Source of the DNA: Anthoceros angustus
Lineage: Eukaryota > Plantae > Anthocerotophyta
Reading direction: 5' to 3'
NCBI GenBank assembly: GCA_010909165.1
Contig: MU008156.1
Span: 868,001-932,000, forward strand
DNA: 64,000 bases
Numbering within the stretch: position 1 is the first letter of the stretch; each line of letters starts with the position of its first letter. A program made the translations under genes and the position numbers. The notes under the pieces were generated by a model. That model searched no databases. It saw nothing but the letters and a program-made list of their open reading frames with translations, and was not told the origin of the DNA. This document shows, piece by piece, positions 1,869 to 53,760 of the stretch.

Positions 1869-2014
1869 CTGCTAACTGCTGCTTGAGAAAAATTAAACGA
1901 ACTGCTATTTGAGAATTCCTAGGGCCTTATTGTCATGCCATCACTGACTGTTCCAGGGACAGACTTTGGAAGAAGAAGAAGAAGAAGAATTTTATTTAAG
2001 TCCACTAAGGACAG

Positions 2015-2260
2015 TGTTACAAAACAATTAATCTGTCCGTAACCCTACCGTCCGCTAGTTACCGTAGACCGTAATTAATAGTATTTAGTAATTATGAACG
2101 GGCGTGCCTCTTCGGAAGAGACACCCACAGACACTATTTAAGACACACTTTGTATACACCTTATAGCTAATTCAACACGAAATATCTTTGTGAGCATAGC
2201 ATCTCGATAATGCTAGATTAGATACAAGAGATGCACAATCCTACTGCTAGGATTTTAACA
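2015..2260 (+). repeat. 5' LTR
   Basis: TGTTA...TAACA, direct repeat of 4892-5137. Confidence 0.95.
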
Positions 2261-2273
2261 TGGTATCAGAGCC
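2261..2273 (+). promoter_or_regulatory. Primer-binding site (tRNA-iMet)
   Basis: TGGTATCAGAGCC immediately after the LTR. Confidence 0.95.
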
Positions 2274-2815
2274 TACATCATGCTTATGATCCTCCGGGAG
2301 TCTAAGGGAGATGCCGCGGCGGCAGTCCCATTGTAGAAGTTCTCAACATGGAGAGCTGTCGTGGCATGCAAACCAAGGCACATGGCTGCCTCGACGGAGA
2401 ATGACCCACGAGCCTACAATAGCCTTGTGCACCGCCTGCCGTGAGGCTCCATCGTTGCAATCAGGCCCACCACCTCAGGCGCGCGGCGACAGATTTCTTC
2501 ACAATTTCTACTACCGCCGCACTGATCCGACCTCGCAGCAAGCTTGGACCTACGGCCCCCACCAATTACACCTGCGAGATAACATGATACTGTGAATTCC
2601 ATCGACAGGTTAGAATTCAACAAAATTACACGAGAATTGAAAGCCTCCCTCCGCCGCATTGAAGCCATTTTGATGCGTGTCTTGTCTATTGCAGGCTAAA
2701 AGAAATCTGGATATGGCCAGTAATTCCAGGCAAGAGGAGCAGCAATTTCCGGCGACCTTACCCTAGCCGTGAGAGCCGGAGGCGCGATCCCGCCCTCACC
2801 CCGACGCCAAGATGT

Positions 2816-2938
2816 GGTGCGCCCGGAGCGCAGCGGTGCGCCCGGAGCGCAGCGGTGCGCCCGGAGCGCAGCGGTGCGCCCGGAGCGCAGCGGTGCGCCC
2901 GGAGCGCAGCGGTGCGCCCGGAGCGCAGCGGTGCGCCC
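2816..2938. repeat. 19-bp GC-rich minisatellite (GGTGCGCCCGGAGCGCAGC), about 6.5 copies, in the retrotransposon leader
   Basis: Perfect tandem copies. Confidence 0.95.
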
Positions 2939-3109
2939 CCGTGGGAGGGCCCCTCCCGCCAGCGCGGAGGCCCGGCGAGGCCCGGCGAGGCCCGGCGTGG
3001 AGCCCCGCCTACGGGCGCGCCCGCACGGAGCCCGCAGGTGGGCGGAGGTCCCGAGGGGCTGGGCTTAATACAACTTTAGTTGCCAAAAATACAATTTTAG
3101 TAGCCAGAA

Positions 3110-3196
3110 ACTAATTCTACGGAACCTGCTGGACTCGAACCCGCTACCTCCATGAACGATGGAGGTGGACTAACCACCACTGTAACCGGATTAGTT
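3110..3196 (-). other. tRNA-derived / Pol III B-box element inside the retrotransposon leader (not a functional tRNA)
   Basis: Minus strand GGTTACAGTGGTGGTTAG...ACCTCCAT-cgttc-ATGGAGGT-AGCGGGTTCGAGTCCAGC, with a perfect B box (GGTTCGAGTCC) in a T-arm-like stem. Confidence 0.55.
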
Positions 3197-3489
3197 TACC
3201 ATGTCTCGTTTTCATTAATTTTTAATCAGTTTCTAGCAGAATATATATACATAAAAGAGGAGAGAAGCGAGCAAGGACGCAAGCTCCAGCGGAGCAAAAA
3301 AAAAAAAAAGGTGGGGAATTCTCACAGGAGAAATTAAAAACAAGTCAGAGATGGATAGCTATATTCTTCGAGATCTCGCAACACCAACAACCCGCGACGA
3401 GGATTCAACTTGAAGTCTTATGACCACAACTTACAGAGACGTGGTGAATCAACTTATACAATACTTCAACTCGCTGCCGGCCACCGCCC

Positions 3490-4860
3490 ATGGCTAGCAC
3501 CTCCTCCCTCGTGGAGAAAAGTCTTCACCACCGATTAAAGAGAAAGATTGATTCAATGGCCAACAGTACCCCGTGTGGCGAGTTCGCATGAAGTCCATAC
3601 TGATAGGTCGAGGTATTTGGAAGATTGTCGATGGAACCCGTTCGAAGCCTACCTCTTCAACCACACCTCCCCCATCAGTTGCTGATATTGAAAGATGGGA
3701 CTACTTGAATGGGATTGCAATTGCCCTCCTCATCAGCGGACTCGACTCAAGCCTGGTGCCCAACATGGAATTCCTCACAGAGGCTTCTGCAATCTGGGAC
3801 CAGTTGTCTAACACCTACAATGTTAACAATGTTCTGACCTTGTCCAGTGTACGGCAGGAATTCAACTCCTTAAAGATGAAGGAGACCGATGCGATTTCTA
3901 CACACACCTCGAAGTTCAGACAGCTGCGAGGGCAGCTCGCCTCCCTTGGCTCAACCATGTCGGAGACCGATGCCGCTGCACAGCTGTTAATGAGCTTACC
4001 ACCGTCTTACCACAACTTCGTGACCAGCCTGATGTTGGTATCGACTCATGGTAAGTCAAGTACACCCTCCACCCTTACAGTGGAAGATATTATCGGTGCT
4101 CTAGATCAGCAGGAGCAGAGCCGCCTTAGCTCTGCAGGAGGGTCCAAGCCCGATGCAGACAGGGCGCTTTCCACCCATTTCGAGCCCGGGAGGAATTCGA
4201 AGGGCAAGGCAAACTTCACCCCTAAAGGTGACTCAACCTCCGCTCTTCCTCGCTGAGCCGGAAACTGCAATTGGTGCGGAGCTGCCGGCCATTGGGCAGG
4301 AGAGTGCCGCAAGAGAGAGGCTAGAGAGCCGCAGAAGGCCGACTTAAGACAGGCAGCCAGTATTGCAGTTAGAGGGAGCGCCAGTATAGCGGAGGCAAAG
4401 ACCGTAAAGATACTTATGGTTTGCCTCAACACCGAGTTGCATCGATGCGGGTGGTATCTCGACAAGGAGCCACCGCCCACATATGCAACAACGATTTCAT
4501 TCACCAAGCTGGATACTCATCCTCTCAGGGAAAGGGTGTTACTTGGTGACGAACGGAGTAGATCCAGCCTGCCAATTATGGGGCAAGGCATTTGCGAATT
4601 TCCCCTCGAGGACGGTTCGGTGCTTACCTTGGAGCCTGTGCTCCTCGTCCCACAAATGGGCAAGAACCTGGTTTCCATGACTCAGCTGCTGAAGCAAGGC
4701 TATCTTGAGATGCTTGTTTCAAGGGGGTCATGCTACTTTTTCAGGACCACAAGTCCTGACTTGTGCCTATTCAGTGCCGTGCCTCAAGACGGCCTGTATA
4801 AGCTTTCATTACCCTTCAGAGGGAGCGCACCAGAGGAGCGCCCATGGGAGATAGCCTCCA
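3490..4860 (+). pseudogene. Copia gag-protease remnant
   Basis: KD*FNGQQYPVWRVRMKSIL (Copia gag N-terminus), Zn knuckle CNWCGAAGHWAGEC after a stop at 4254, frameshifted WYLD-GATAHIC protease. No integrase, RT or RNase H. Confidence 0.9.
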
Positions 4861-4891
4861 CCATCGCTCGTCACCAAATTTTAAGAGGGAG

Positions 4892-5137
4892 TGTTAGGAA
4901 ACAATTAATCTGTCCGTAACCCTACCGTCCGCTAGTTACTGTAGACTGTAATTAATAGTATTTAGTAATTACGAACGGGCGTGCCTCTTCGGAAGAGACA
5001 CCCATAGACACTATTTAAGACACACTTTGTATACACCTTATAGCTAATTCAACACGAAATATCTTTGTGAGCATAGCATCTCGATAATGCTAGACTAGAT
5101 ATAAGAGATGCACAATCCTACTGCTAGGATTTTAACA
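4892..5137 (+). repeat. 3' LTR
   Basis: Direct repeat of 2015-2260, preceded by the PPT. Confidence 0.95.
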
Positions 5138-6123
5138 GACAGATTTCCGTCATGGGACTTGGTACTTAACAACTTGTACCATGATGTGCCTAAGCTACTT
5201 GCACCAAGGCATCCACTCCCTTTAGGCATCCCATCTAAGTACCGATCCAAGCTCAAGATGCTTAATCACGGCGTAAAATCATACGGAAGAGTGGCCAAAG
5301 AAATCTTTTATATTTTTCTTATGTGAAATTTGTTGTACCCACACGCAATTGATGTACTGGCCTTCCATCAGCTTTACCTCACACAGTGTGCCTCGTCAAT
5401 CACAAACCTAGGCAGCTGCCCGGGGCTGTAGCATGCACCGAATTTTGCATCAAGATGCTGCAGGGGTACCCAAAACGCAAAGAGGCACGAGACCGTTGTT
5501 CATAGAGTATGGAGTCCTTCAAAATCAAGGGAGAGCAAAGCTCAAAGAGATTACCCGCACCTTTTGATCCAGACGTCCCAGGACATCTTGAAAGCAAGTT
5601 GTGCTCCCAACAACTTTGTCAGGGTTTTCACAAACTAGGTTACATGACGCGTGCCGTTGTTTCCTGACCCAGTAGGCAAACAGATCCGGACAGGTGAAGA
5701 AGTTTGCCTCCAAACTTGTCCACTGGGTGACGTTTAATTAGCCTCCGTGCTTGTTGAAACCATCTCCATTTCACCTACAAATCGAAGACAAGACGAAAGC
5801 ACCTCGTCCACAGGTACCATTTCCGGACCACTGGCAAGCTCCATACAAGGTGGACATAAGTTGTTACATGCATTCAGATTAGCTTAAGAGCTATGCAATA
5901 GAAGAAAAGGCACCAGTGTCTTTACTCAAAATGGTGCTAAGGACTCCACAAAGTCTTTGGAACAAATGTCCCAGGTGCTGTTCCCAATCTAACTCTCTGG
6001 CCATTATGACCTCCACGCTAATCTGATCACGGATGCATTCCCAAAGTTCACATCGTATCTGCAGAGACCTAACAAAAATGTACATGAGACAGGTTGCAGG
6101 CTGTTCAGGAATCAGCAGCGGGC

Positions 6124-8872: not shown

Positions 8873-10030
8873 TCAAGGCTTCAGGTCGATCGATCGGCAC
8901 ATGGCACAAGCACTTCCGCTAGTCCGACACACAGCCCTCTCGTACGCCTCCCCAAATTTGAAGTACTCCAAAAGCATTCCACGGCGATAACGCATCTGCC
9001 AAATGTACAAACGTATGCACCCGCGCGGGGAAAAGCATACGCGAGAAAGAGGGGTGAGCACAACACGGGAGGAGCATGTCAGCTGGCTCCGAGTGGAAGA
9101 ATTGATTGGGTTGTACCGTCTCTTGCCAGTAGGTTTGCATCTTCCGAGCCTCCTCCATGCCCATCTTGAATCTCTCCTTACTTCGGCCGTGGCCCGAGCG
9201 TAGCATGCGTATGATTATGCTGAAATCCTGCTTTTGTTACAGTGGCGTGAAGGCCAAGAGCAGCCCTCTGCATTCATGGCAAGGAGGTGTGGTTGGAAAG
9301 GACGTCAAGAAGTTAAGGTTGCAAGCCGGTGACCTGACTCTCGACTTACCACGTCGGCACTGTTGATTCCCATCCCGAAGACCGCAGTTGCACATATGAC
9401 CTGTACTTCACCACTCTGCCAACTCTGTTGCACCCACTCAACTCCCGTTGGCGGCTGGTGTGCGGCTTTTAACTTGGATGTTTGCTGGAGATGACTGGAC
9501 GCCTCCATGCATTCCTTCTGTGAGAGGCAATGAACGATTCCACATTTCTTATCGAACCGACTCTGGATGAGGTCACCCAGCTGCTTCACAGGGTCCTTCG
9601 CATCTTTCTTCAGGAGCACGTACGTGAGATTTGACCGGTCTAAGCCCACTTCCAGCACAAGGCCTCGCGGAATTCGAAGGATCGTAAGTCTGTCCTGCAA
9701 GCAGAACACAGCCAGGAAACAGTTACCAATGTGATTTGGTTGTTGAAACTTATGGAGGACGAACCCACCCCGCGCCGTACCTTACGAACGTTGCGTGTTG
9801 CCGTGGCTGTTTACTTCCATGACAGGTACTGCTGCTTCAAAATTCCTAGGGCCTTCTAGTCTTGCCTGAAGTCATTCCCCCATTGACTGTTACATGACAG
9901 ACGTGTGTGCAAGGGTGGCCCAAACATATCTTGTTCTTTTTTTCTGTTTGGTACAAAAACCATTACGTGTGACAGAGGCAATTGGGAACTGACCTTCCAT
10001 CAACTTTACCTCACACAATGTGCCTGGTCA
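8873..10030 (-). pseudogene. RECQ1-like helicase, 3' half (b): motif II to the C-terminal Zn-binding domain, degenerate
   Basis: DQAHCV, LGILKQQ, TATAT, DRSNLTY, CGIVHCLSQKEC, VICATAVFGMGI, MLRSGHGRSKERFK, RRGMLLEYF.GE...C...C..C. Contains in-frame stops and has lost motif VI. Confidence 0.85.
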
Positions 10031-10552
10031 TCCGAGTCCCAATTGATAAGGACACTCCCGACCCTCATATACCAATTTGCAACCACAACCCACATGCGCA
10101 CATCTGGTGTAAAAACTGTGACCGATCAACCTTTATCTAGGGTTTATTGGCTATGGCGCGTGCTTATCCAAGACCACGATACTCAACCAGTTACACCACT
10201 CCTCTATCGGTGCATGTAACAGCCCAGCACTCTCCATTTTGCCCTAGGGTCACACTCGCAATGGCATATGAGGAGCACGGCAATCGCGACAGTGGAATCA
10301 AACGTTGCAACGAGATCAGCCTCGCTATGGCAAAGGTAGAAGCGATCATGTGGGAAGGCTAGGTGGTCAGTCATATGATGCTTTGGAAGGCTTTGGTATA
10401 CCTCGCTATGGCAAAGGTAGTTGGAAGGCATTGCTATACCTCGCTATGGCAAAGGTAGAAGCGATCATGTGGGAAGGCTAGGTAGTCGGTCATAGGCTTT
10501 GCTATATTAGTTTGTATGGAGATTTAGCCCCTGCCGTACTTTGAAGACGGAG

Positions 10553-13083: not shown

Positions 13084-13493
13084 CCACTTCGATCATGTGC
13101 TATTACAATATTATCCTTAGAAGGAAATACAACTTATGTATACATAGAAACCACTTCGATCATGTGCTATTACAATATTATCCTTAGAAGGAAGTACAAC
13201 TTATGTATACATAGAAACGAATTTTATTTAAGTCCACTAAGCTATTACAATATTATCCTTAGAAGGAAGTACAACTTATGTATACATAGAAACCACTTGG
13301 ATCATGTGCTATTACAATATTATCCTTAGAAGGAAGTACAACTTATGTATACATAGAAACCACTTGGATCATGTGCTATTACAATATTATCCTTAGAAGG
13401 AAGTACAACTTATGTATACATAGAAACCACTTGGATCATGTGCTATTACAATATTATCCTTAGAAGGAAGTACAACTTATGTATCATAGAAAC
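13084..13493. repeat. 67-bp tandem repeat, about 6 copies, one unit containing the SINE 3' end
   Basis: ccacttSgatcatgtgctattacaatattatccttagaaggaagtacaacttatgtatacatagaaa repeated. Confidence 0.9.
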
Positions 13494-13657
13494 GAATTTT
13501 ATTTAAGTCCACTAAGGACGGATTTCCGTCATGGGCCTTGGTGCTTAACAACTTGTACTATGGTGTGCCTAAGCTACTTGCACCAAGGGCATCCACTCCC
13601 TTTAGGCACCCCATCTAAGTATCGATCCAAGCTCGGGATGCTTAATCACGGCGTTCT
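13494..13657 (-). mobile_element. 5S-rRNA-related SINE-like element, copy 2 (uninterrupted)
   Basis: Minus strand AGAACGCCGTGATTAAGC...GATACTTAGATGGGGTGCC...GACGGAAATCCGTC...AAATAAAATTC, highly similar to the joined copy 1. No clear TSD. Confidence 0.7.
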
Positions 13658-14056
13658 TATAAATGTGTGTCCATTTGGCCTAATCCATTTGGACACACTA
13701 AAGGATTAGCCTCAAACTAAGTCAAGACATTTCTATTTTTTTTCATGTTTTCATTATGTTTGAGTCTCATGATATCAACTCTTCTTGGTAGACTTACATA
13801 TATTTTCCTTCTACTCCCATTCACCAAAAGATATCAACTTACTTTTATTTAGGGGAAAAAAATATGTATGCCTTCACTAATCTTCATTCTTCTTTGAAGC
13901 TAAAGCTCTTGGAAATATCTATAACATATTCCACTACACGATCTTTTATTACAACTCCATGTACACACCAAGGTTCATGAGAGCCTACAATGTTATCTTA
14001 TACCACATTTATCACATGACAATACATAGAAAAGGAAGAAAAATTTTGATTGTTGT

Positions 14057-14983
14057 CTATTGCGGATGATAAATAGGTTGAATAATACAGGTCCTACAAA
14101 TCGGACAATTCATATTGGAATATAGCCACTTTGCGATACATTCTATATGAAATGGATGTCCACAAGAAGGACAAAGGTATATGATATGTCCTAAAGGAGG
14201 GCATTCTAAACATATTGAACACATTTCATGTGTAGAGGAAATAGGCATTAATTTTATATCTTTCTCGCAAACTCCCATGAACTTATGATTACCCACCATA
14301 GCATGTTGCAAGTAGGCATTCCATGGTAAAGAAATAACAGTCATAGGTACAATATTTGGCGCTGGCGCTGGAACGTAAAATGCTGTATGATAATCTTTTG
14401 TATTCAATCCACTTAAGAATGCCGTTTCATACATCTCTTCTTCAATCTCTTCTTGCCTTACTACACATGCCATATCTTTAGTACTAGATAGATGAAAATG
14501 TAGGAGCACCATACGCATCCCGTATTGGTATCGACCACATCCGGCTCCTTCATTTCCTCCTCCTTGATATGAAGCATCTACGTTTTCAGCTATTTGAATT
14601 CTTGTTTCATTTTCTTGTTCTTGATTTAAACCATGTGCGTCTCCAACTATAACACCACGCGTTTGATTCAGTTCTCGTTCTTGATTTGAAGAATGACCAA
14701 TTATTTGATAATCTATTTGATCAAATTCTCGTTCCTGATTTGAAATTATTTGATCTACTCTTTGATTTAATTCTCTTTCATGATTTGAAGCAATTTGATC
14801 CCTTCTTTGATTAAATTCTTGATCCTGACTTGAAGCATTTTCAATACGTTGTAGATTAAGCTCTGTCGATCGTTGGTCCTTGGTGCGGGATGTAACGTGC
14901 GATATCACCTCTTTCATAATAATAAAAATTATTATAATAAAAATTATAATGAGAATAGTCATCATTATCATCATCATCATCAT
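14057..14983 (-). CDS. ATL-like RING-H2 E3 ubiquitin ligase (N-terminal TM, NQERELNQ repeats, C-terminal RING-H2), copy 1
   Basis: Poly-Met/Ile hydrophobic N-terminus, GLD-like motif GVCEKDIKLMP, CSICLE...CGHPFHIECIAKWL....CPICR, intronless. Confidence 0.85.
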   Translation of the reverse strand: MMMMMIMMTILIIIFIIIIFIIMKEVISHVTSRTKDQRSTELNLQRIENASSQDQEFNQRRDQIASNHERELNQRVDQIISNQEREFDQIDYQIIGHSSNQERELNQTRGVIVGDAHGLNQEQENETRIQIAENVDASYQGGGNEGAGCGRYQYGMRMVLLHFHLSSTKDMACVVRQEEIEEEMYETAFLSGLNTKDYHTAFYVPAPAPNIVPMTVISLPWNAYLQHAMVGNHKFMGVCEKDIKLMPISSTHEMCSICLECPPLGHIIYLCPSCGHPFHIECIAKWLYSNMNCPICRTCIIQPIYHPQ

Positions 14984-15104
14984 GTCTATGATAAATAGAG
15001 ACTCTCGTTGTGTCTAATTTAAGAAACTATCTTGCCCTTTAAAAATAGGGATACGGCTTGTAGATTAATGTGCCTCAACCAATCGTTAAGCTTTAAAGTC
15101 GCAG

Positions 15105-15400
15105 GATAATGTGCCTGAACCTATTGCCAAAGTCTAAAGTCTTCGAATGAATTTTATCTCTACTAGTTCCTAATATCCTCAATTGATTGTTTGAGATTGT
15201 GTTTTGTCTAATCCATCATGGTTTTGAGCACGTTTATTCTTGATTCAAACAAGATAATGTGCCTGAACCAATTGCCAAAGTCTAAAGTCTTCGAATGAAT
15301 TTTATCTCTACTAGTTCCTAATATCCTCAATTGATTGTTTAAGATTTTGTTTTGTCTAATCCATCATGGTTTTGAGCACGTTTATTCTTGATTCAAACAA
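15105..15400. repeat. 148-bp tandem duplication upstream of RING copy 1
   Basis: gataatgtgcctgaacc...ttgattcaaacaa occurs twice here and once in each paralogous upstream region. Confidence 0.85.
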
Positions 15401-15781
15401 GATTCTCAAGTGCCTGTCAAGTTTACTCTTCCGCATAAGTATCACATTTATGAGTTTTATCTGCAAAGCTCAAGGGTCTTTTACAAATCTATCATCCATA
15501 TGATAAATAATCACTTAAGCTCTTCTCATTTATATATAGGTAAGTAGAATTACTTTTCCTTTCAAAAAAGAGCTTTAACTTAGCAACTACTAAAACCACT
15601 CTCTTAATGCATTTGATAGAGAAAGTAGATAGCATCGTTTAGACACTATTACTAAATACTATGACATACTATATGTATGGCATGCCACATGGCCTATCAA
15701 TGAGAACTATAGTTAGACTTTACTATTTTGTAATTTGTACATGCTTTACAAGTGGTTCACATCTTTCTTCAAGAGCACATA

Positions 15782-23354: not shown

Positions 23355-25410
23355 ATAACCCTCTCTAACCGCACTAAGGTCTCTTGTGCATGTAGCCTCA
23401 TCGCAGGAATCTCCGATGGGTCAACCTCCCTTGTCCTAGCCATCGAAATAACCGTGCCAAGCCGACTATGGGCTAATAGACCTCCCGCGGTAAAGCTCCC
23501 CGCAATGCAATTGGGAGATAATACTCCATAACTTTTTTCCAGTCATGTGTTTTAAGGCCAGATAGTTTCCCGTCTGCAAACCTCTGTCCGATGTATGCGG
23601 CAAACCCAGATGGTGGCCTAATCAACTTCAGCTGCTCATGCACCATCGCCATGGCCTCCGGCTCCACAACATACATCGCATCAACATATGTAGCATCTGC
23701 GGCTGTGCTCGACGGCCAGAGGTCTGGTTTGGTGTTTACATCATAATCTGCCATGTCCCGCCGACAGGGGAGATCATCCTTAACACCAGATAAGAAACCA
23801 TAAAGTGAAACCACAATGTTCTTCAAAATGTGCATGCAATCTTTAAGATCACCCACTAATAGATGTTGCGGATTCAGTGATAGGGGATTAGAGCACATAT
23901 TGTAACCCAAAAACAAGGCTGAAGGAATAAATGAATGATAAAGCGAGAGGTCAGGGAAAGAATAGTACCCTTTTGTAAGGGAGGTAGTCGTAGGCAGCCC
24001 ATTTCTTCCACACATTCCACCGCCATTGCTCCATATGGTCTTGTGGCGTGGCAGACTCCCATGCATCCATCTCGTCTACAATCATGGCAGTCGTTATCCT
24101 CATTGGAGGCGCGACCGTCTCTACAACTCCGTTGAAAAGATGGATGTCTTGGACCCTAAGGTCATGGTCAAGAGGGAGCAACTTCCGGGTCCCTGGGTAA
24201 ACCACTTTGTGAAGATGAGGCGAGTGTCGGGCCTCGAGGTGCTTCCAACATGGGGGGCACGCCATATATCCTGAAGTATGGAGGCCACATAAAGTTCCCA
24301 TGCCCGGGTAGTCTGCCATCATGCAGAGTTGCGCGGCTCGCAGCCTAAAAATGCTCTTTGGATGGCCAATAGGGTACGAGGCATCTACGGCTTGTATGCC
24401 ATGCCATAACTCCCGCATGTCCTCGTACAACGGCGCCAGATATACATCAAGATTGCATGGCTTATGTGGCCCAGGCACCAACACAGCCGTCAATATGTAT
24501 TCCTTCCGTATGGTCTTCCAAGGGGCCAAATTATAGTTCAGAAGTAGAACTATGCTTCTGTCCGAAGGGATTAATGCCATCAGTGCTTAAGCCAAATCGG
24601 AGATTACAGTCTTCCTCCCCGAAACCATCAATCGCATCCGGTGTAGCCCATGCGGGCATATCTGCCATTAGTGCCATTTTACCGGTCTCACTTCGGAGTT
24701 GCCGATGGGCCACACGATCGCGGGCCAGCTGTGGAATAACGAACATATGTCGGCACCTCTTCAAAAGGGGGAAGTACCACATGACTTTGCTCGGAGTGCG
24801 TTCCTTCTTCACAGTGTCGGCCCGGTAACGAGGAAGGCCACATTTCAAGCAATTTTTCTCCCTCGAATATTGCCCTCTAAACAGCATGCACCCTTTAGGA
24901 CATACATGGATCCGCTCACATCCCATCGACACACATGAAATAATGCCCAAAGCTTCCGCTCGGCTCGCCGAAAGGCAATTCCCCTCTGGTAATATTGCCG
25001 TATGCAAAGCTTGGAAAAGGGCATCCATAGCAGCGTGGCTCACTCCGTACTTTGATTGTATTTCGAGGACAATCATAACGGCCGAGAGAACATCCACTTT
25101 GGTACCGGCGAACAAAGTTCGGCCGGCTGCCACCAGGAGCTTGCCCAAATCACCGGCACCATCCGCACCCACTCCATCAAAAAAACTAGAGTCCACTCGT
25201 TCGGCAATGTCATCTGCACTTCCTTGGATGTGCCATATTCATCCTCTCCTAGCGGGTCCATAATGTCTGCATCGGCGGCGCCACTATCCTCTTCCTGGTT
25301 ATCATTGCTTTGCATTTGCCCCCCCTCGAGCGTGGCAGGTTGGCCACGGGCCCGTATCCCGGACCCCAATGGGCGGCCGAATTGGTCGTAGTATCAAGCT
25401 TCTGGGCTAT
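23355..25410 (-). pseudogene. CACTA/En-Spm Tnp2-family (Transposase_21-like) transposase core, frameshifted
   Basis: RIHVCPKGCMLF..CLKCGLPRY, NLRFGLSTDGINPFG, NYNLAPW, VPGPHKPCNLDVYLAPL, ADYPG, DCMHILKN, LSGLKTHDW. Confidence 0.9.
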
Positions 25411-39300: not shown

Positions 39301-39918
39301 GCCATGAAGAAGCCGCGGTGTGTACAAGCATCTGATAAGTTGAAGGCAAGATAAACCTTCATGACTATTGTGCTAATTGAGGATGTGAGGTTCTCTTTGA
39401 AGCTATCTCCATAACTATGGACCATTGTTGGCTTTGATTCTTGCGAGTCCTTCTCTTTCTCCTTGCCTTTATTCTTGTTTTGGTTAATCTTGTCATCAAG
39501 ATTTTCTTCGTTGTCATCCTGTCCAACCATCGCACGTGAATTTAGAAGGCATCGCTAGATCGTGCGCATGCATGTATGGAGAAGTTGATATATTCTGAAT
39601 TTCCTACATCTTCATCAGAATTAGAATCTGCAGACTGGGGGGAGTTTTTGTTATGAGGAGTTTTTTTTTTAGGGAGACTTGAGACTGTAAGATTTAATTT
39701 ATCAATAACATTGCTAAGATAGCAAATTTATCTAGTTATCTAGTGAAAAAAATTCTCATTATGTTACAGCGTGTCATAATTCCCGATTTTGAACGCACAG
39801 GTTGAAATGCATGCGGCATTGCATTGCACCACTCGCGACAATACCAAAGCTATACCATTCTTTGTGGATTAGGGTTAGTCATTACCATGGCTCGTGCCTT
39901 AGGCAAGGACGACTTTGT
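36385..39918. repeat. ~1.77-kb tandem duplication of unidentified, probably TE-derived sequence
   Basis: 36385-38158 matches 38159-39918, differing mainly by small indels. Confidence 0.8.
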
Positions 39919-39950
39919 GGCTGGAGGGAGCCATGAGAGGAGCGATTGCG

Positions 39951-40458
39951 GGAGGATGTAGGAGGAGGCTAGAGGGAGTGATGGCACATGCATGAGTAGG
40001 AAAGTAATATTGTCGGGGCCAAAATATGAGGGATCAATCCTAGGATATGGGTGCATGTGGATAAAAAGATTGCAGTTGGAGGATGTAGGAGGAGGCTAGA
40101 GGGAGTGATGGCACATGCATGAGTAGAAAAGTAATATTGTCGGGGCCAAAATATGAGGGATCAATCCTAGAATATGGGTGCATGTGGATAAAAAGATTGC
40201 AGTTGGAGGATGTAGGAGGAGGCTAGGGGGAGTGATGGCACATGCATGAGTAGGAAAGTAATATTGTCGGGGCCAAAATATGAGGGATCAATCCTAGAAT
40301 ATGGGTGCATGTGGATAAAAAGATTGCAGTTGGAGGATGTAGGAGGAGGCTAGAGGGAGTGATGGCACATGCATGAGTAGGAAAATAATATTGTCGGGGC
40401 CAAAATATGAGGGATCAATCCTAGGATATGGGTGCATGTGGATAAAAAGATTGAAGTG
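39951..40458. repeat. 127-bp tandem repeat, 4 copies
   Basis: Unit starts at 39951, 40078, 40205 and 40332. Confidence 0.95.
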
Positions 40459-40606
40459 GAAGTTTGATAACGCTTGGGATACAATGTGGCTATGCTCTTT
40501 CCACTTCCTATGGTTTATTTTTCTTCATCTTCATCATCATGTCTTCCATGCGCCGGTGTTGGGAGTGGCGCAATAGCAGGGTCTAGGAGGTCGTGACGGC
40601 GAGGCC

Positions 40607-40871
40607 GGCGGTGAGCCGGATTCCAGGTTTAGGGTTTCACAAGTATAGGGTTTCAGAGGTTTAGGGTTTTGCGGCAGCTGATCTTCTAGGTTTAGGGTTT
40701 CACAAATTTAGGGTTCCACAGGTTTAGGGTTCTGTGGCTGCTGATATTCTAGGTTTAGGGGTTTATAAATTTACGGTTCCACAAGTTTAGGGTTTTACGG
40801 TAGCTGATCTTCCAAGTTTAGGGTTTCACAAATTTAGGGTTCCAAAGGTTTAGGGTTTTATGGCGGTGAGC
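40607..40871. repeat. ~63-bp tandem repeat, 4 copies, each with three TTTAGGG-like telomere/telo-box motifs
   Basis: ggtttagggtttcacaaatttagggttccacaggtttagggtt... periodicity. Confidence 0.9.
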
Positions 40872-41871
40872 TAACTTTCGATGTCGCAGCCTCTGAGGCT
40901 TCCCTTGGGCGCCTTGAGAACTCCCGAGATAGGCGGCTAGACTTTGTTCCTTTTTCTTCCCCGGTGGTGTCTCCGTCGCTCTTGAGGTCGGAATTCAGGT
41001 CATAGGGAGGTTGCCTCCTAGCTCCGCCGTTTCCGGGCCGGGGACTGGCAGGCTCTTCAGGAAGAGGGGGGTTATGCTGCTCGAGATCATCATCATCCCA
41101 TGTCAATATGTCATAGCAGTTCGCCGTCCTCTCCACCCTTGCGACTTGCACATCTCGGGAGATATCGGGTTCTGGAACGAGCATCCCGTCCGAGACCTTA
41201 TCCGAGAGGGCGATGCTTAACTGCCATGTCCTTGTTGCCATTTACACCATTCCTCTATCGAGGCATGTAACAGCCCAGCACTCTCAGTTTTGCCCTAGGG
41301 TTACACTCCCGGTGGCATATGGGGAGCACGGCAATCGCGACGGTGGAATCAAATGGTGCAATAGAATTGGCCTCGCTATGGAAAAGGTAGAAGCAAGCAT
41401 GTGGGATGGCTAGGTGGTCGGTCCTATGATGCTTTGGAAGGCTTTGCGAAACGATGAAGACATGACATTTAGGTACACATATGAAGGATTAGCAAAGGTT
41501 TGAAGGATTTTTAGTTTAGCATAAAATTAAGTCAAGACCTTTTTATTGTTTTTCATGTTATCATTACATTTGAGTCTCATGATGTCACCCATTCTTGATA
41601 CACTTACATGTATCTTCCTTCTTCTACTCCCATTTACCAAAAGATATCAACCTATTTTTATTTAGGGGAAAAAGATATCTATGCCTTGACTAATCTTCAT
41701 TCTTCTTTGAATCTAGAGGTCTTGGAAATATCTAGAACATATTCCGCTACATAATCTTTTATTACAACTCCATGTACACACCAAGGTTCATGAAAGTCTA
41801 CAGTATTAACTCATACCACATTTATCACATGTCAATAAGTAGAAAAGAAAAACAATTCTTATTATTATCCA

Positions 41872-42816
41872 CTACGGATGATGAACAGGTTGAATAATAT
41901 AGGTCCTACACATTGGACAATTTATATTGTAATATAACCACTTTGCGATACATTCTATATGAAATGGATGTCCGCAAGAAGGACAAAGGTATATAATATG
42001 TCCTAGAGGAGGACATTCCAAACATATAGAACAAATTTCAGATGTAGAGGAAATAAGCATTAATTTTATATCTTTCTCACAAACTCCTACGAATTTATGA
42101 TTACCCACCATAGCACGTTGCAAGCCGGTATTCCATGGTAGAGATATAACAATCATAGGTACAATATTTGGTGCTGGCGCTGGAACATAAAATGCTGTAT
42201 AGTAATCTTTTGTATTCAATCTACTTAGGAATGCCTCTTCATACATCTCTTCTTCAATCTCTTCTCGCCTTACTATACATGCTATATCTTCAGTAGTAGA
42301 TAGATAAAAATGTAGGAGCACCATGCGCATCCCATATTGGTATCGACCACATCCAGCTCTTTCATTTCCTCGTCTTGAATATGAAGCATCTGCGTTTTCA
42401 GCTGTTTGAATTCTTGTTTCATTTTCTTGTTCTTGATTTAAAGCATGTGCATTTATTAGATCACGTTGATTAAGTTCTCGTCCTTGATTTGAAGAATCTG
42501 CACTTCTAGTTATTTGATAACCAATTTGATTAAAGTCTCGTTCCTCATTTGAAATTATTTGATCAACTCTTTGATTTAATTCTCGTTCATGATTTGAGGC
42601 AATTTGATCCCTTGTTTGATTGAATTCTTCATCCTGATTTGAGGCATTTTCAATACTCTGCTGGTTAAGCTCTGAAGCATCTTCAATTAACTGGTTAAGC
42701 TCTGGCGGTCGTTGGTCCTTCATGCGAGGTCTAACGCATGATATTACCTCTTTCAAAATAATAACTAGACAAATAATAATGAGAAAAGTCATCATCATCA
42801 TCATCATCATGTCCAT
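41872..42816 (-). CDS. ATL-like RING-H2 E3 ubiquitin ligase, copy 2
   Basis: Paralogue of 14057-14983 with intact TM and RING-H2. Confidence 0.85.
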   Translation of the reverse strand: MDMMMMMMMTFLIIICLVIILKEVISCVRPRMKDQRPPELNQLIEDASELNQQSIENASNQDEEFNQTRDQIASNHERELNQRVDQIISNEERDFNQIGYQITRSADSSNQGRELNQRDLINAHALNQEQENETRIQTAENADASYSRRGNERAGCGRYQYGMRMVLLHFYLSTTEDIACIVRREEIEEEMYEEAFLSRLNTKDYYTAFYVPAPAPNIVPMIVISLPWNTGLQRAMVGNHKFVGVCEKDIKLMLISSTSEICSICLECPPLGHIIYLCPSCGHPFHIECIAKWLYYNINCPMCRTYIIQPVHHP

Positions 42817-44528
42817 GATAAATAGATAAATTAGATAAGGCGAAAGTCGCTCGCATAAGCATAAGAAAAACTAACTTGCCCTATAAAAATAGGGATACGG
42901 CTTGTAAATTAATAAGCTCAAATCAACCTCTAAGCTTTAAAGTTGCAGGGTAACGTGCCTGAAATTCGCCAAAGCACTAAAGTCTTTGAAGAAATTTATC
43001 TCTGCTAGTTCCTAATATCCTCAATTGATTGTATGAGATTGTGTTTTGTCTAATCCATCATGGTCTTGAGCTGTATCGAGGTTTATTCCTGCCTCAAACA
43101 AGATTCTCAATTGCCTATCAAGTTTACTCTTTCGCACAACTGTAATATTTATGAGTTTTATTTGCAAAGCTCAAAGGTCATTTACAAATGTATTATCGAT
43201 ATGATAAATAATCAATTAACCTCTTCTCATTTATATATAGGTAAGTAGAATTATTTTCCGTTTCAAAAAACGAGCCTTAACTTAGCTACTACTAAAACCA
43301 GTCTCTTAATGCATTTAATAGAGAAAATAGATAGCATTGTTTGGACACTCTTACTAAACACTATGATATAAGATATATGGCATGCCACATGGCCTATCAA
43401 TAAGAAATATAGTTATACTTTACTATTTTGTAATTTGTACATGCTTTACAACTAGTTTGCATTAGGGAATTGGATAATGGAGCTGCTCCAACCTGTTAGG
43501 CTTCTTGTAAAATAATTTTCTATTTTGGGGATATTTTTTCTTGAAATGAGACATGTTTATGGTACCTTTAGGGTAGACAATCGGGGGCTGGTGTAAGAGT
43601 CATCTCCCCAAAACAAAACCGTCTTTCCTATGTAGCTTGCCCTATTTATCATGCCGCTGGCATCCTATTTTGGCATGTGAGTTGTGCCTCATAAGTGGCG
43701 AGGATGGAGAACATATAGCATGAAGAAAGGGCTGTGACCGTAAGACCGGCTAGGAGCGATATTACACGCGAATTCAACAAGGTGAACATAATCCTCCCAA
43801 GACTCTTGGTGACAAGAAACAAACAGTACTAAGGAGGGAAAGGTTTTACAAGACCCCTCGCTCCCTAGTCCCTAGTGCAAACCGGTTGTAAAGCATGTAC
43901 AAATTACAGAACAGTAAAGTCTAACTATAGTTCTTATTGATAGGCCATGTGGCATGCCATACATATAATATGTTCTAGTGTTTAATAAGAGTGTCCAAAC
44001 TATGCTATCTACTTTCTCTATTACATGCGCTAAGAGAGTGGTTTCAGAAGCAGCTAAGTTAAGGCTCGTTTTTGAAAGGGAAATTTATTCTACTTACCTA
44101 TATATAAATGAGAAGAGCTTAAGTGATTATTTATCATATCGATGATAGATTTGTAAAAAACCCTTGAGGTTTGCAAATAAAACTCATAAATGGGATAGTT
44201 GTGCAAAAGAGTAAACTTGATAGGCAATTGAGAATCTTATTTGAGTCAGGAATTAATAAACCTCTATATAGCTCAAAACCATGATGGATTAGACAAAACA
44301 CAATCTTAGACAATCAATTGAGGATATTAGGAACTAACACAAATAAAATTCATTCGAAGACTTTAGAGCTTTGGCAATAGGTTCAGGTACATTACCCTCC
44401 GATTTTAAAACTTGGCAATTGGTTCGGGCACATTGATCTGCAAGATGCATCCCTATTTTTAAAGGGCAAGTTAGTTTCTCTTATATGAGAGACTCTCCCT
44501 GTGTCTAATTTATCTATTTGTCATAGAC

Positions 44529-45400
44529 ATGATGATGATGATAATGACTATTCTCATTATTATTTATATTATTATAATTATGAAAGAGGTGATATTACGC
44601 GTTAGACCTCGCATGAAGGACCAACGACTGCCAAAGCTTACCAACAGCGTATTGAAACGCTTCAAATCAAGATCAAGAATATAATCAAACAAGGGATCAA
44701 ATTGATTCAAATCTTGAACGAGAATTAAATCAAAGAGTTGATCAAATAATTCCAAATCAGGAACGAGAATTTAATCAAATAGGTCATCTAGTAAATGGTC
44801 ATTCTTCAAATCAAACACGATCTTTTAATCGAACACGTGATCTAATAGTTGGAGATGCACATGCTTTAAATCAAGAACAAGAAAATGAAACAAGAATTCA
44901 AACAGCTGAAAATGCAGATGAGGAAATGAAAGAGCTGGAGGTAGTCGATACAAATACGGGATGCACATGATGCTCCTACATTTTCACCTATTAAATACGA
45001 AAGATATGGCTTTTGTACTAAGGCACGAAGAGATTGAAGAAGAGAGGAATGAAACGGTATTCTTAGGTAGATTGAATACAAAAGATTATTATACAACGTT
45101 TTATGTTCTCGCGCCAGCGCCAAATTTTGTACCTATGACTGTCATATCTCTACCATGGAATATTGGCTTGCAATATGCTGTGGTGGGTAATCATAAGTTC
45201 ATGGGAGTTTCTGAGAAAGATATGAAATTAATGCTTATTTCCTCTACACCTAAAATTTGTTCTATATGTTTGGAATGCCCTCCTCTATGACATGTTATAT
45301 ACATCCATTTCATATAGAATGTATCGCAAAGTGGTTATATTACAATATAAATTGTCGGATTTGTAGGACCTGTATTATTCAACGTATTTTTCATCCATAA
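44529..45400 (+). pseudogene. ATL-like RING-H2 copy 3, pseudogene
   Basis: Early frameshifts, GGA>TGA at 45288, and a deletion removing LCPSCG from the RING. Confidence 0.9.
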
Positions 45401-45659
45401 TGGATAATAATAAGAATTTTTTTCCTTTCTACGTATTGACATGCAATAAATGTGGTATGAGATAACATTTTAGGCTCTCGTGAACCTTGGTGTGTACATG
45501 GAGTTGTAATAAAAGATCGTGTAGCAGAATATATTATGGATATTTCGAGAAGCTCTACCTTCAAAGAAGAATGAAGATTACTGAACGCCTAGATATCTTT
45601 TTCCCCTAAATAAAACTAAGTTGATATCTTTTGGTAAATGGGTGTAGAAGAACGATTCT

Positions 45660-47947: not shown

Positions 47948-48400
47948 ATGATCAAGAGTCCATGGCTTGTGAAATGGACTCCCTACTTCCTGCTTATGCT
48001 TGCAAGCATATCTATCTTAATGATTGCATTTATAGCCTTAATGAAATCCTACTGTAGGAACGACGAGAGGCGAGCTATTGAAGGAGAAGACCAGGCAATA
48101 CAAGCTAGAGCGAATTGGGCGGCAGGGCGGGCAAAAGAGGAGGCGCGGCGTGAAGAGGAGGAGCGGGTTGAAGAGAAGGAGCGGGTGGAAGAGGAGGACC
48201 GGGTTGAAGAGGAGGAGCGGGTTGAAGAGGAGGAGCGGGTTGAAGAGGAGGAGCGGGTTGAAGAGGAGGAGCGGGTTGAAGAGGAGGAGCGGGTTGAAGA
48301 GGAGGAGCGGGTTAAAGAGGAGGAGGGATGTGAAGAGGAGGAGCAGGTTGAAGAAGAGGAGCAATGTGAAGAGGAGGAACAGGTTGAAGAAGAGGAGTGA
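47948..48400 (+). CDS. Single-TM protein with (EEEERV)n acidic repeat, probably truncated or pseudogenised
   Basis: Hydrophobic YFLLMLASISILMIAFIALM followed by an 18-bp repeat array (48150-48490) with TGA stops in the later units. Confidence 0.45.
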   Translation: MIKSPWLVKWTPYFLLMLASISILMIAFIALMKSYCRNDERRAIEGEDQAIQARANWAAGRAKEEARREEEERVEEKERVEEEDRVEEEERVEEEERVEEEERVEEEERVEEEERVEEEERVKEEEGCEEEEQVEEEEQCEEEEQVEEEE

Positions 48401-48763
48401 CGTGAAGAGGAGGAGCGGGTTGAAGAAGAGGAGTGATGTGAAGAGGAGCAGCGGAGTGAAAAGGAGGAGCAAGTTGAAGAGGAGGAACGTGTTGTAGTAA
48501 TCATGATTCAAAGCATGAGGTTAGAGTCCTACTTGGTCCACCAGTTAACAATATGGGCCTGCCTGGGACAATATCAAGCCTAGAAATGGATATTACCATA
48601 AAACACGTTTCCATTAGCTGAAGAGGAGGAGCAAAGGAACCTGGCGAGGAGGAGTGGTGTAATTAATGAACACAAGTTGTTCACAGATGAGTGAACAACT
48701 TAGCCTTGGATGAATGGGCAATGGTATTCGAGAGATGGATGATATTGAAATATGAGCCGACAT

Positions 48764-49005
48764 TGAAGACCTATGTGCTAAATAGCATGTGAAGATGTTT
48801 TTACTAGATGGGCTTACCCCATCTCTTCTCTGAAAACTCCAAAATTTGAAGACCTATGTGCTAAATAGCATGTGAAGATGTTTTTACTAGATGGGCTTAC
48901 CCCATCCCTTCTCTAAAAACTCCAAAATTTGAAGACCTATGTGCTAAATAGCATGTGAAGATGTTTTTACTATATGGGCTCACCCCATCTCTTCTCTGAA
49001 AACTT
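48764..49005. repeat. 83-bp tandem repeat, about 3 copies (fourth degenerate copy near 49075-49150)
   Basis: tgaagacctatgtgctaaatagcatgtgaagatg... at 48764, 48847 and 48930. Confidence 0.9.
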
Positions 49006-49914
49006 TAATCCGATAATGGTATTTGGGAGATGGATATTGCAATGTGAGCTTTGCTGACATCATTAGTGAGAGAAAACCTATGTGCCATATCCCATGTGAA
49101 GATCTCCTTTAGTAGATGGGCTCACCCCATCTCTTCTCTAAAACTTTAATCCGATGTGAAGATATTTATGTGTCGGTATCAATTTCTTGTGTTACTTTGA
49201 AGTACAATAAGACCTAGAACTCACATTGGAATATAGGACCCCTACCCCCTTTTGTTCGGCACACGTATACCTAAACCTTTCCGAGATTCGAGCTCACGTG
49301 GTGGTGCCTTCACATATTAAAACTTTCTAATTCTTTGAAGTTATGACTAAATTTAGTTTTCGTTAACGGCTTCAAGCTACTAATCTGTATCAATTTGTAC
49401 CCAATTGTGATTCACGATATTAAGAATTTTTCGCAAGCCATCCTCACCAAACCACCAAACTCCCTCCACTGCATGGCTCAAGCTCAAGCTCTCCATGGCA
49501 TTGATTAGGTTGGGCTAGCCTATAGTCATTCTAGGCAGGAAGAATTTATCAGTTGATCAATCTCACGAGGAGCAGACTGTGGACATTCCACTCACGATCA
49601 GAGAGAATTCATCGATTCAGCAATCTTTAGCGGAGGAAAGGCTAGTATTCATTTCTGTTCCACTCATGATCAGAGAGGATTCATCGATTCAGCAATGTGC
49701 AGAGGAGGAAAGGCTAGTATTCATTCCTGTTAGAGAGAATTCTTTGACTGAGCAATCCAAAGAGATGCGCGAAGGTGCCGGGCTATGCACCCGGTGCGCC
49801 GAGTGCGTGAGTGGAGTGAGAAGGGGATGGCATGAGAGCCGCCTTGTTGGATTGACAACTACAAAGCTCCCGCACATCAGAGCGCTTGGTTTTATCTTCT
49901 CTTATCTTACATTT

Positions 49915-52589: not shown

Positions 52590-53760
52590 CCCCCTCACAA
52601 ACGCTGTGTGTTGCTGTGGCTGTTAATGGCGTGACAGGCACTCGAGGGAACTAATACTGCTGCTTCAGAATTCCTAGGGCCATATAATCTTGCCTAAGTC
52701 ATGCCCCACTGACTGCTACAGGACAGACTGTGTAAGCCTGGCCCAAAGAGTTTTTTCTTCTTGTGTGTTTGCTGTACAAGAAACCATTACCTTCACAGGC
52801 AGTTGTTACTGGCCTTCCATCAACTTTAACTCACACTATGTGCCTCATCAATCACAAATTTACCTTCACAAGCAATTGATACTGGCCTTCCATCAACTTT
52901 AACTCACACAATGTCCCTCGTCAATCACAAACCTAGCCAACTGCGCCTGCAGCATGCGCCCAATGTTGCATCAAGGTGCTGTGCCACCCAAACCGGAGAG
53001 AGGAAGGGAAGCATAACTGTTGGGCACTCTAAAGTCCTTCAAAAATTTCACGCTGAAAAACAGAAGTGCTTCAAAACTTCGCTCAAAGAGATCACTCGCA
53101 CCTTTTGATCCAGACGTACCAGGACATCTTGCAAGCTTGTGCTTCCAACGATGTTTCTCATGGGTTACATATACTAGCTTACATGACGCCCGTTGTGTGT
53201 CCTGCTAGGCAAACAGGATCCGCAAAAGATTAACTCCCTTTGTGCTGTTCGATTCCAATCGGTGGGAAGTCACAATCTTGAAAAAGAGCTCACCTGAGCT
53301 CATCCAGCACAGACATGGCCTGGGAGCGCGTTTGTTGAGAACGTAGATACGCTGCAAGGATGGTGTACCGCTCGACCAATTCCAGGACTTGATGTTGGAT
53401 GAGGTACAGCAGAGGCGATATACAACTGTCACACCTGGGCATAGTATCACAGGAAGCTGATATGCAAATCAGTCAGCTAAGGCCAACCACCTTGTCCACA
53501 TACAGTACAGCCAGTAGCCAATCTGAGCCTCACCTGATTGCAAAGACTTTTACCACCACCAGTTGGCAATAAGACGAAGCAGTCCTGGCCAGGCACAGTG
53601 GCCTCACATGCCTTGCGCTGCAGTTGAGGAAAGCATTTGTGCTCAAACTCAGCTAGATTATCTAAGCCGAAATCATCTAATCCTTGAAGTTCTGTCAGAG
53701 TGTCCCCTGACCTCGAGGCAGCCCAGTCTGTGGGCCACCTGCAACTAAGTAGGAATCGAT
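52590..53760 (-). pseudogene. RECQ1-like helicase, 5' half (c): motifs I-III with introns, degenerate
   Basis: DCFVLLPTGGGKSLCNQ, GVTVV-SPLL..IQHQV, SCKLVYVTHEK, RFVIDEGHCV, LGILKQQY*FPRVPVTPLTATAT. Confidence 0.85.

Follow-up and report, generated by a model that had tools for sequence, protein, structure and literature searches.

A short SINE-like retroposon with a LINE-type tail and a putative 5S-type control region in a plant

A short non-coding element, less than 215 nt long and present twice about 8 kb apart in the 64,000-nt stretch of plant DNA analysed here (the window), is best explained as a SINE, i.e., a LINE-dependent retroposon of the plant, with a proposed life cycle based on Pol III and 5S boxes. 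We regard this reading as probable. A sequence-only reading of the same DNA had already pointed to a short retroposon that is dispersed, ends in a microsatellite, and is flanked by a target-site duplication (TSD), and this is supported by the comparison of copy 1 with uninterrupted paralogues of its target. The more specific proposal that the family is the first plant 5S-promoter SINE (SINE3 type), in which boxes A and C stand behind a new 5′ hairpin and the RNA is mobilised by a LINE via a stem-loop and (TTC)n, has in our judgement a little better than an even chance of being correct. Transcription by Pol III, the 5S ancestry of the boxes, and the LINE partner are what we infer. The features are listed in Table 1.

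Table 1. Coordinates of the two SINE copies, their parts, and the sequences associated with them (positions of the window).
Feature	Position	Strand	Basis or remark
SINE copy 2	13494..13698	-	~205 nt, probably full length
5′ hairpin GTGTGTCC AAA TGG ATTAGG CCA AAT GGACACAC	13665..13698	-	predicted fold
Box A-like block AGAACGCCGTGATTAAGC	13657-13640	-	direct read and consensus match
Box C-like block TACTTAGATGGGGTGCC	13605..13621	-	18 nt 3′ of AAGC
Long body stem CCTTGGTGC...GCACCAAGG	13588-13536	-	in minimum-free-energy and centroid structures
3′ hairpin GACGG-AAAT-CCGTC	13530-13517	-	sequence read and fold
3′ end CTTAGTGGACTTAAATAAAATTC, containing AATAAA	13516-13494	-	sequence read
Element 3′ ~60 nt, GACGGAAATCCGTC...AATAAAATTC(TTC)n			
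Last 22-23 nt of copy 2, duplicated within tandem array	13219..13241	-	BLAST/sequence match
SINE copy 1, 5′ part	5143..5284	-	5′-truncated
SINE copy 1, 3′ end	1974..2012	-	(TTC)5 tail at 1989-1974
Copy 1 TSD, 5′ copy	5285..5290	.	GGAAGA on + strand, TCTTCC in element sense
Copy 1 TSD, 3′ copy	1968..1973	.	merges into tail; alignment with uninterrupted paralogues
Nested non-autonomous copia-type LTR element, 3.1 kb	2013..5137	+	splits copy 1

Copy 1 is proven to be an insertion: it begins at 5284 and ends in a (TTC)5 tail, with a TSD of 6 bp. Its host repeat has two uninterrupted paralogues (52650-52870 and 9822-10040) with one hexamer each (GTAAGC or GCAAGG), and in the alignment with these paralogues, the flanks of copy 1 (1898-1973 and 5285-5410) overlap on GGAAGA. 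The tail and the GGAAGA duplication claimed for this copy in the earlier reading are borne out, and the single hexamer in both uninterrupted paralogues strengthens the case. In the element sense, the duplication begins with T and lies 7-13 nt 3′ of TTTCTTT. A TSD with T as its first base, shortly after a run of T, is the signature described for RTE-related SINEs (PMC6007223); the context of copy 1 fits it, in one case only. The host repeat itself has three members in the window (1898-1973 plus 5285-5690; 52650-53222; 9822-10040), which are 73-87% alike. Its 73-nt unit forms a tandem pair at 52787 and 52860 and is also found at 5335 and 9967.

The LTR element that splits copy 1 has LTRs of 248 nt (2013-2260 and 4890-5137; 97% identical), TG..CA ends, and a TSD of its own, GACAG, at 2008-2012 and 5138-5142. 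Its primer-binding site (PBS), TGGTATCAGAGC at 2261-2272, follows the 5′ LTR directly and is a tRNA-iMet primer site, while a purine tract (PPT), AAGAGGGAG, precedes the 3′ LTR. It encodes gag only (copia-type domain PF14223), for which the protein search gave a single match, at 52% identity, and a GC-rich 19-bp tandem array is located at 2797-2967. The LTRs are unrelated to the SINE, and the LTR element was inserted into copy 1 later.

With the nested element removed, the two SINE copies are 94% identical over 161 nt, matching from 13654 downstream; BLAST aligned 138 nt of them at 92.8% (5138-5274, with a further piece at 1987-2012). Eight of the ten differences between the copies are transitions, and in the stems, the two copies yield no compensatory changes, only wobble-compatible transitions. 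The boxes of the two copies show no differences where about 1.8 would be expected, and hence this comparison is uninformative, as is that of the stems. The 3′ hairpin together with CTTAGTGGACTTAAATAAAATTC (13494..13530) consists of the same letters in both copies.

The 5′ ends are not alike. Copy 1 starts at 5284 with 10 nt, GTATGATTTT, unlike copy 2, and clear homology to copy 2 is seen only from ACGCCGTG on. The sequence-only reading had the two copies start only a few bases apart, near 5S position 40. Neither half of this is supported: the first 10 nt of copy 1 are unmatched and the AGA of AGAAC is not common to both copies, while copy 2 most likely extends about 41 nt further 5′, into the hairpin at 13698-13665. 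Copy 1 is better read as truncated, and so the common start at ACGCC is not the start of the family. With a start near 5S position 40, box A would stand at the extreme 5′ end, where it could not serve a type-1 promoter.

All the strings quoted in the earlier reading of copy 2 are present on the minus strand at 13494-13657, including the 30 nt ending in TACTTAGATGGG (13621-13610) and followed by GTGCC. Copy 2 has a predicted folding z-score of −2.85 and a tail of a single TTC. Its sense strand bears no TTTT, which is weak evidence, as about half of random sequences of that length also lack it. The only open frame of the element is antisense and 71 aa long, and no protein in the protein collection shares a word with it. 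The hairpin at 13698-13665 is probably the 5′ end of the element, as judged from one copy. This reading is suggested by two weak but converging indications, namely, the truncation of copy 1 and the position equivalent to 5S +1 at 13696. In the Rfam search, the 5′ hairpin drew a chance-level match to mir-BART2, a spurious miRNA-like stem.

Copy 2 lies directly 3′ of a RING-H2 gene (14057-14983), and its segment is missing at a paralogous locus, locus B (41446-41516). No convincing TSD was found for copy 2 there, the junction at locus B being blurred by indels and by a 16-nt resemblance to a hairpin arm; locus C, considered as another empty site, diverges too early. The 16 nt in question belong to the left arm of the 5′ hairpin and resemble the SINE-less locus B, so the 5′ limit of copy 2 stays anywhere from 13684 to 13706. 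At 41461-41486, locus B reads TATGTGTACCTAAATG, like the left hairpin arm, and CTTCATC precedes the common flank GTTTC. The likeness is due either to chance or to a relic of a SINE lost by internal deletion, in which case the insertion would predate the duplication.

A segment of about 2 kb with a RING-H2 zinc-finger ORF occurs in three copies, at 13706-15757, 41516-43270, and 43880-45655 (inverted), with 86-90% identity; the RING-H2 ORFs lie at 14057-14983 and 41872-42816, and the SINE stands beside the first segment copy only. The RING ORF is not on record in the protein collection. On the other side, a 67-bp tandem array of six units (13084-13493) begins exactly at the 3′ end of copy 2. In one array unit, the last 22 nt of the SINE stand in place of 14 nt, so that the spacing there is 75 nt. 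As the SINE 3′ end is found inside an array unit, the array grew after the insertion, apparently by slippage at an AGTGG microhomology. Other, unrelated tandem arrays in the window are found at 48037-48540 (18 bp), 39824-40585 (127 bp), 40620-40864 (63 bp), and 48763-49011 (83 bp). Fragments of a Tnp2 (CACTA-type) transposase (PF02992) lie on the minus strand at 23473-25196. A POT/NRT1 transporter domain and a papain-type protease domain, together with the copia gag, the tRNA-iMet primer site, and Tnp2/CACTA, are consistent with a plant host.

The hairpin, AATAAA, and microsatellite tail are typical of LINE 3′ ends, and copy 1 is clearly 5′-truncated, so that both copies might be fragments of a LINE 3′ UTR, all the more as two copies cannot establish a common full length. 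We consider this unlikely. Copy 2 stops within about 205-213 nt, against flank common to the paralogous locus, and the ends of the two copies are no more than about 50 nt apart. Their 5′ part contains the top-scoring 5S-box site of the window, which there is no reason to expect in a LINE UTR. Furthermore, no LINE ORF or LINE domain was detected among the 20 ORFs scanned in the window (the 16 longest and four shorter ones), and apart from the 23-nt duplicate at 13219-13241, no other sequence with the tail of the element is present in the window.

The resemblance of the head to 5S rRNA was gauged on the sequence alone, with references taken from Rfam or from papers, since the Rfam model scores the whole folded RNA. 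With that model (5S_rRNA, RF00001), the check was negative: cmscan of the whole window gave no hit at the gathering score, and at E<=10, the 119-451-nt stretches 13350-13800 and 13540-13658, one of them cut where the element putatively starts, gave neither 5S nor tRNA. Taken block by block, the box A-like block agrees with RF00001 consensus positions 42-58 at 12/17 and the box C-like block with positions 77-93 at 11/17, at the 18-nt spacing of the model itself. The two-block score of 23/34 is the highest among the 128,000 window positions, the next being 21 (copy 1 and one unique site); it occurs at 11 of 38.4 million shuffled positions (~0.04 per window) and in one of 20000 element shuffles. 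A second box-A-like site at 41222-41238 (21/34) was set aside: the sequence is unique and its match no better than chance.

Another reference was an angiosperm 5S segment of 56 nt (positions 34-89), built from published probes (PMC7413363). Ungapped, the element scores 31/56, again the best of the window, a value seen at 36 of 38.4 million shuffled positions (~0.12 per window) and in 2 of 20000 element shuffles. The gapped local alignment to this segment has a score of 13, equalled by 8 of 1276 window tiles and reached by 17 of 5000 shuffles (P = 0.003). The degenerate boxes of Cassandra and 5S, RGTTAAGYRHGY and RRRATRGGTRACY, set 18 nt apart (PMC7215508), are matched at 10/12 and 9/13 with exactly 18 nt between them; other window sites do equally well or better, and the score is reached in 239 of 300 shuffled windows, i.e., at chance level. 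The canonical plant C-box is AGGATGGGTG (PMC10853983).

The element was recognised as a retroposon without recourse to the 5S match, and we therefore take the per-element probability, about 1e-4, as the fair measure. By this measure, the box match is significant; window-wide, at 0.04-0.12, it is borderline. The match lies in the 5′ half of the element and has the same sense as the tail. An alignment of the boxes with 5S places position +1 at 13696, 2 nt away from where the hairpin starts (13698). A type-1 layout, in which about 50 nt precede box A and the boxes have the 18-nt spacing, is present only on condition that the element truly begins at the hairpin. For the earlier claim of a 5S-type head, the evidence is suggestive only. 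In its favour is the best box match of the window, in the sense orientation and with the A-to-C spacing of exactly 18 nt as in 5S. Against it, Rfam is negative, the 18 nt between the boxes (the intermediate element region) match 5S at only 4/18, and boxes A and C are paired with each other in the predicted fold, unlike in 5S. A control region of 5S ancestry is moderately supported and seems the likelier origin of the boxes, short of being established.

The same retroposon features would equally suit a true SINE, or another short retroposon, that has a LINE-type tail but a head of strongly diverged tRNA type, with A and B boxes, or of other origin, the 5S likeness being fortuitous. SINEs are mostly tRNA-derived, and some have no detectable homology to a source RNA (PMC8825457). 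The negative Rfam result for 5S, the window-wide 5S match of only 0.04-0.12, and the chance-level match to the Cassandra box consensus all agree with such a head. In addition, an A-box-like TGTCCAAATGG (position 12) or AGGCCAAATGG (position 26), combined with a B-box-like GGATCGATACT (position 79), gives 14/18 (7/9 + 7/9), a score that only 8 of 1000 shuffles reach (P ~0.008). However, neither ARAGORN nor Rfam finds a tRNA-like fold, the 5S test per element outdoes the test for type-2 boxes by a factor of about 80, and the 5S boxes are exactly 18 nt apart, at a distance from the start of the hairpin that is like that in 5S. We hold this origin of the head to be possible but rather doubtful. 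ARAGORN detects no tRNA gene anywhere in the window (1-64000). The B-box-like GGATCGATACT lies at 13628-13618, and the arms of the hairpin (13695-13671) contain two repeats, CCAAATGG, that resemble an A-box; the SINE head may carry a hybrid or a type-2 promoter.

Another carrier of such boxes deserves consideration, because Cassandra is known to bear a 5S promoter in plants, has boxes A and C 18 nt apart, as here (PMC7215508), and a tRNA-iMet primer site, also typical of Cassandra (PMC7215508), is found nearby (TGGTATCAGAGC at 2261-2272). That the copies are a fragment or a solo LTR of a Cassandra-type TRIM is nevertheless very improbable. The nearby PBS is that of the copia-type element, which has its own LTRs and its TSD GACAG; these are the only LTRs nearby, and they are unrelated to the SINE, in line with the earlier statement that the element is not Cassandra. 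At either site, the SINE stands alone, unaccompanied by a direct repeat. It lacks TG..CA ends as well as a PBS and a PPT, and its 3′ terminus is AATAAA-(TTC)n; its TSD is 6 bp, not 5 bp, and the Cassandra box consensus is matched only at 10/12 and 9/13. Single copies, the lack of TG..CA, PBS, and PPT, the microsatellite end, and the 6-bp TSD together mean that the defining features of Cassandra are absent, and Cassandra or its solo LTR is ruled out by anatomy. A MITE is ruled out as well, as there are no terminal inverted repeats.

For the LINE-mobilised SINE with 5S-type boxes, the following life cycle may be proposed. RNA polymerase III would start about 50 nt upstream of the box A/box C-like control region, at the foot of the 5′ hairpin, and would transcribe the full unit, whose sense strand is devoid of TTTT. 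A LINE ending in the same tail would supply the reverse transcriptase, which would recognise the 3′ stem-loop and AATAAA-(TTC)n and copy the RNA into a nicked target, with the nick a few bases 3′ of a T-rich run and the (TTC)n tail priming on the TCTTCC target. The outcome would be a short target-site duplication and an often 5′-truncated copy.

Further copies were sought by exact matching of a 22-mer of the body, a 21-mer of the tail, and a gapped pattern of the boxes in metagenome, prokaryote-genome, and viral contigs, with no match in any of them; the host genome is seemingly absent from these collections. The description given here is that of the two copies in the window.

SINE3 elements, which are derived from 5S, are known in fish, mammals, reptiles, and insects, while plant SINEs described so far are, to our knowledge, either tRNA-derived or of unknown origin. 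According to a 2024 review, no 5S-derived SINE is known in plants, which have Cassandra LTR elements instead (PMC10946416). No later report of a plant 5S-derived SINE was found in the literature searched.

With zebrafish SINE3, fruit-bat MEG, and the lepidopteran HaSE3 and CsSE2, the present element shares its small size and non-coding nature, a sense 5′ part resembling 5S boxes A and C, a body, a LINE-type 3′ end with a microsatellite tail, a TSD, and 5′ truncation. In lepidopteran SINE3, too, conservation is centred on the promoter boxes (PMC10886601). In contrast to known SINE3 elements, the one described here resides in a plant, its 5S similarity is limited to about 50 nt and escapes the Rfam model, and its first ~34 nt form a hairpin unrelated to 5S. 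There is precedent for a 5S similarity restricted to the promoter, namely, Ajax and lepidopteran SINE3 (PMC10886601).

Cassandra TRIMs of plants and Ajax of nemerteans are similar in carrying 5S promoter boxes for Pol III, 18 nt apart, without a functional 5S RNA, a property that in the present case is read from the sequence; Ajax is alike also in that only the promoter part has been retained. Both differ in having two LTRs, a PBS, a PPT, and 5-bp TSDs, none of which the present element possesses, its end being a LINE-type tail. The Au-like plant SINEs mobilised by RTE resemble it in the 3′ hairpin, the microsatellite-like tail, and the short TSD that starts with T a few bases 3′ of a T run (PMC6007223). 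They differ in their tRNA-type heads and other tails, and the likeness stated here is one of features.

What the window contributes is a clean empty-site proof of retroposition, a chronology of nested insertions, and a sober gauge of the 5S similarity. For annotation, tools for finding 5S or SINEs that require Rfam-level similarity can miss or misread such elements. If the proposed reading is true, the element and its LINE would form a pair suitable for probing how the stem-loop and the (TTC)n tail are recognised, and the type-1 Pol III promoter would have been captured by non-LTR retroposons in plants, too. A SINE3 inserted into an LTR has been proposed as the origin of the Cassandra 5S region (PMC10886601), and the present element would then be a concrete candidate for a progenitor of this kind. 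Provided that the 5S reading holds, a SINE3-type element would exist in a kingdom from which such elements were thought to be absent.
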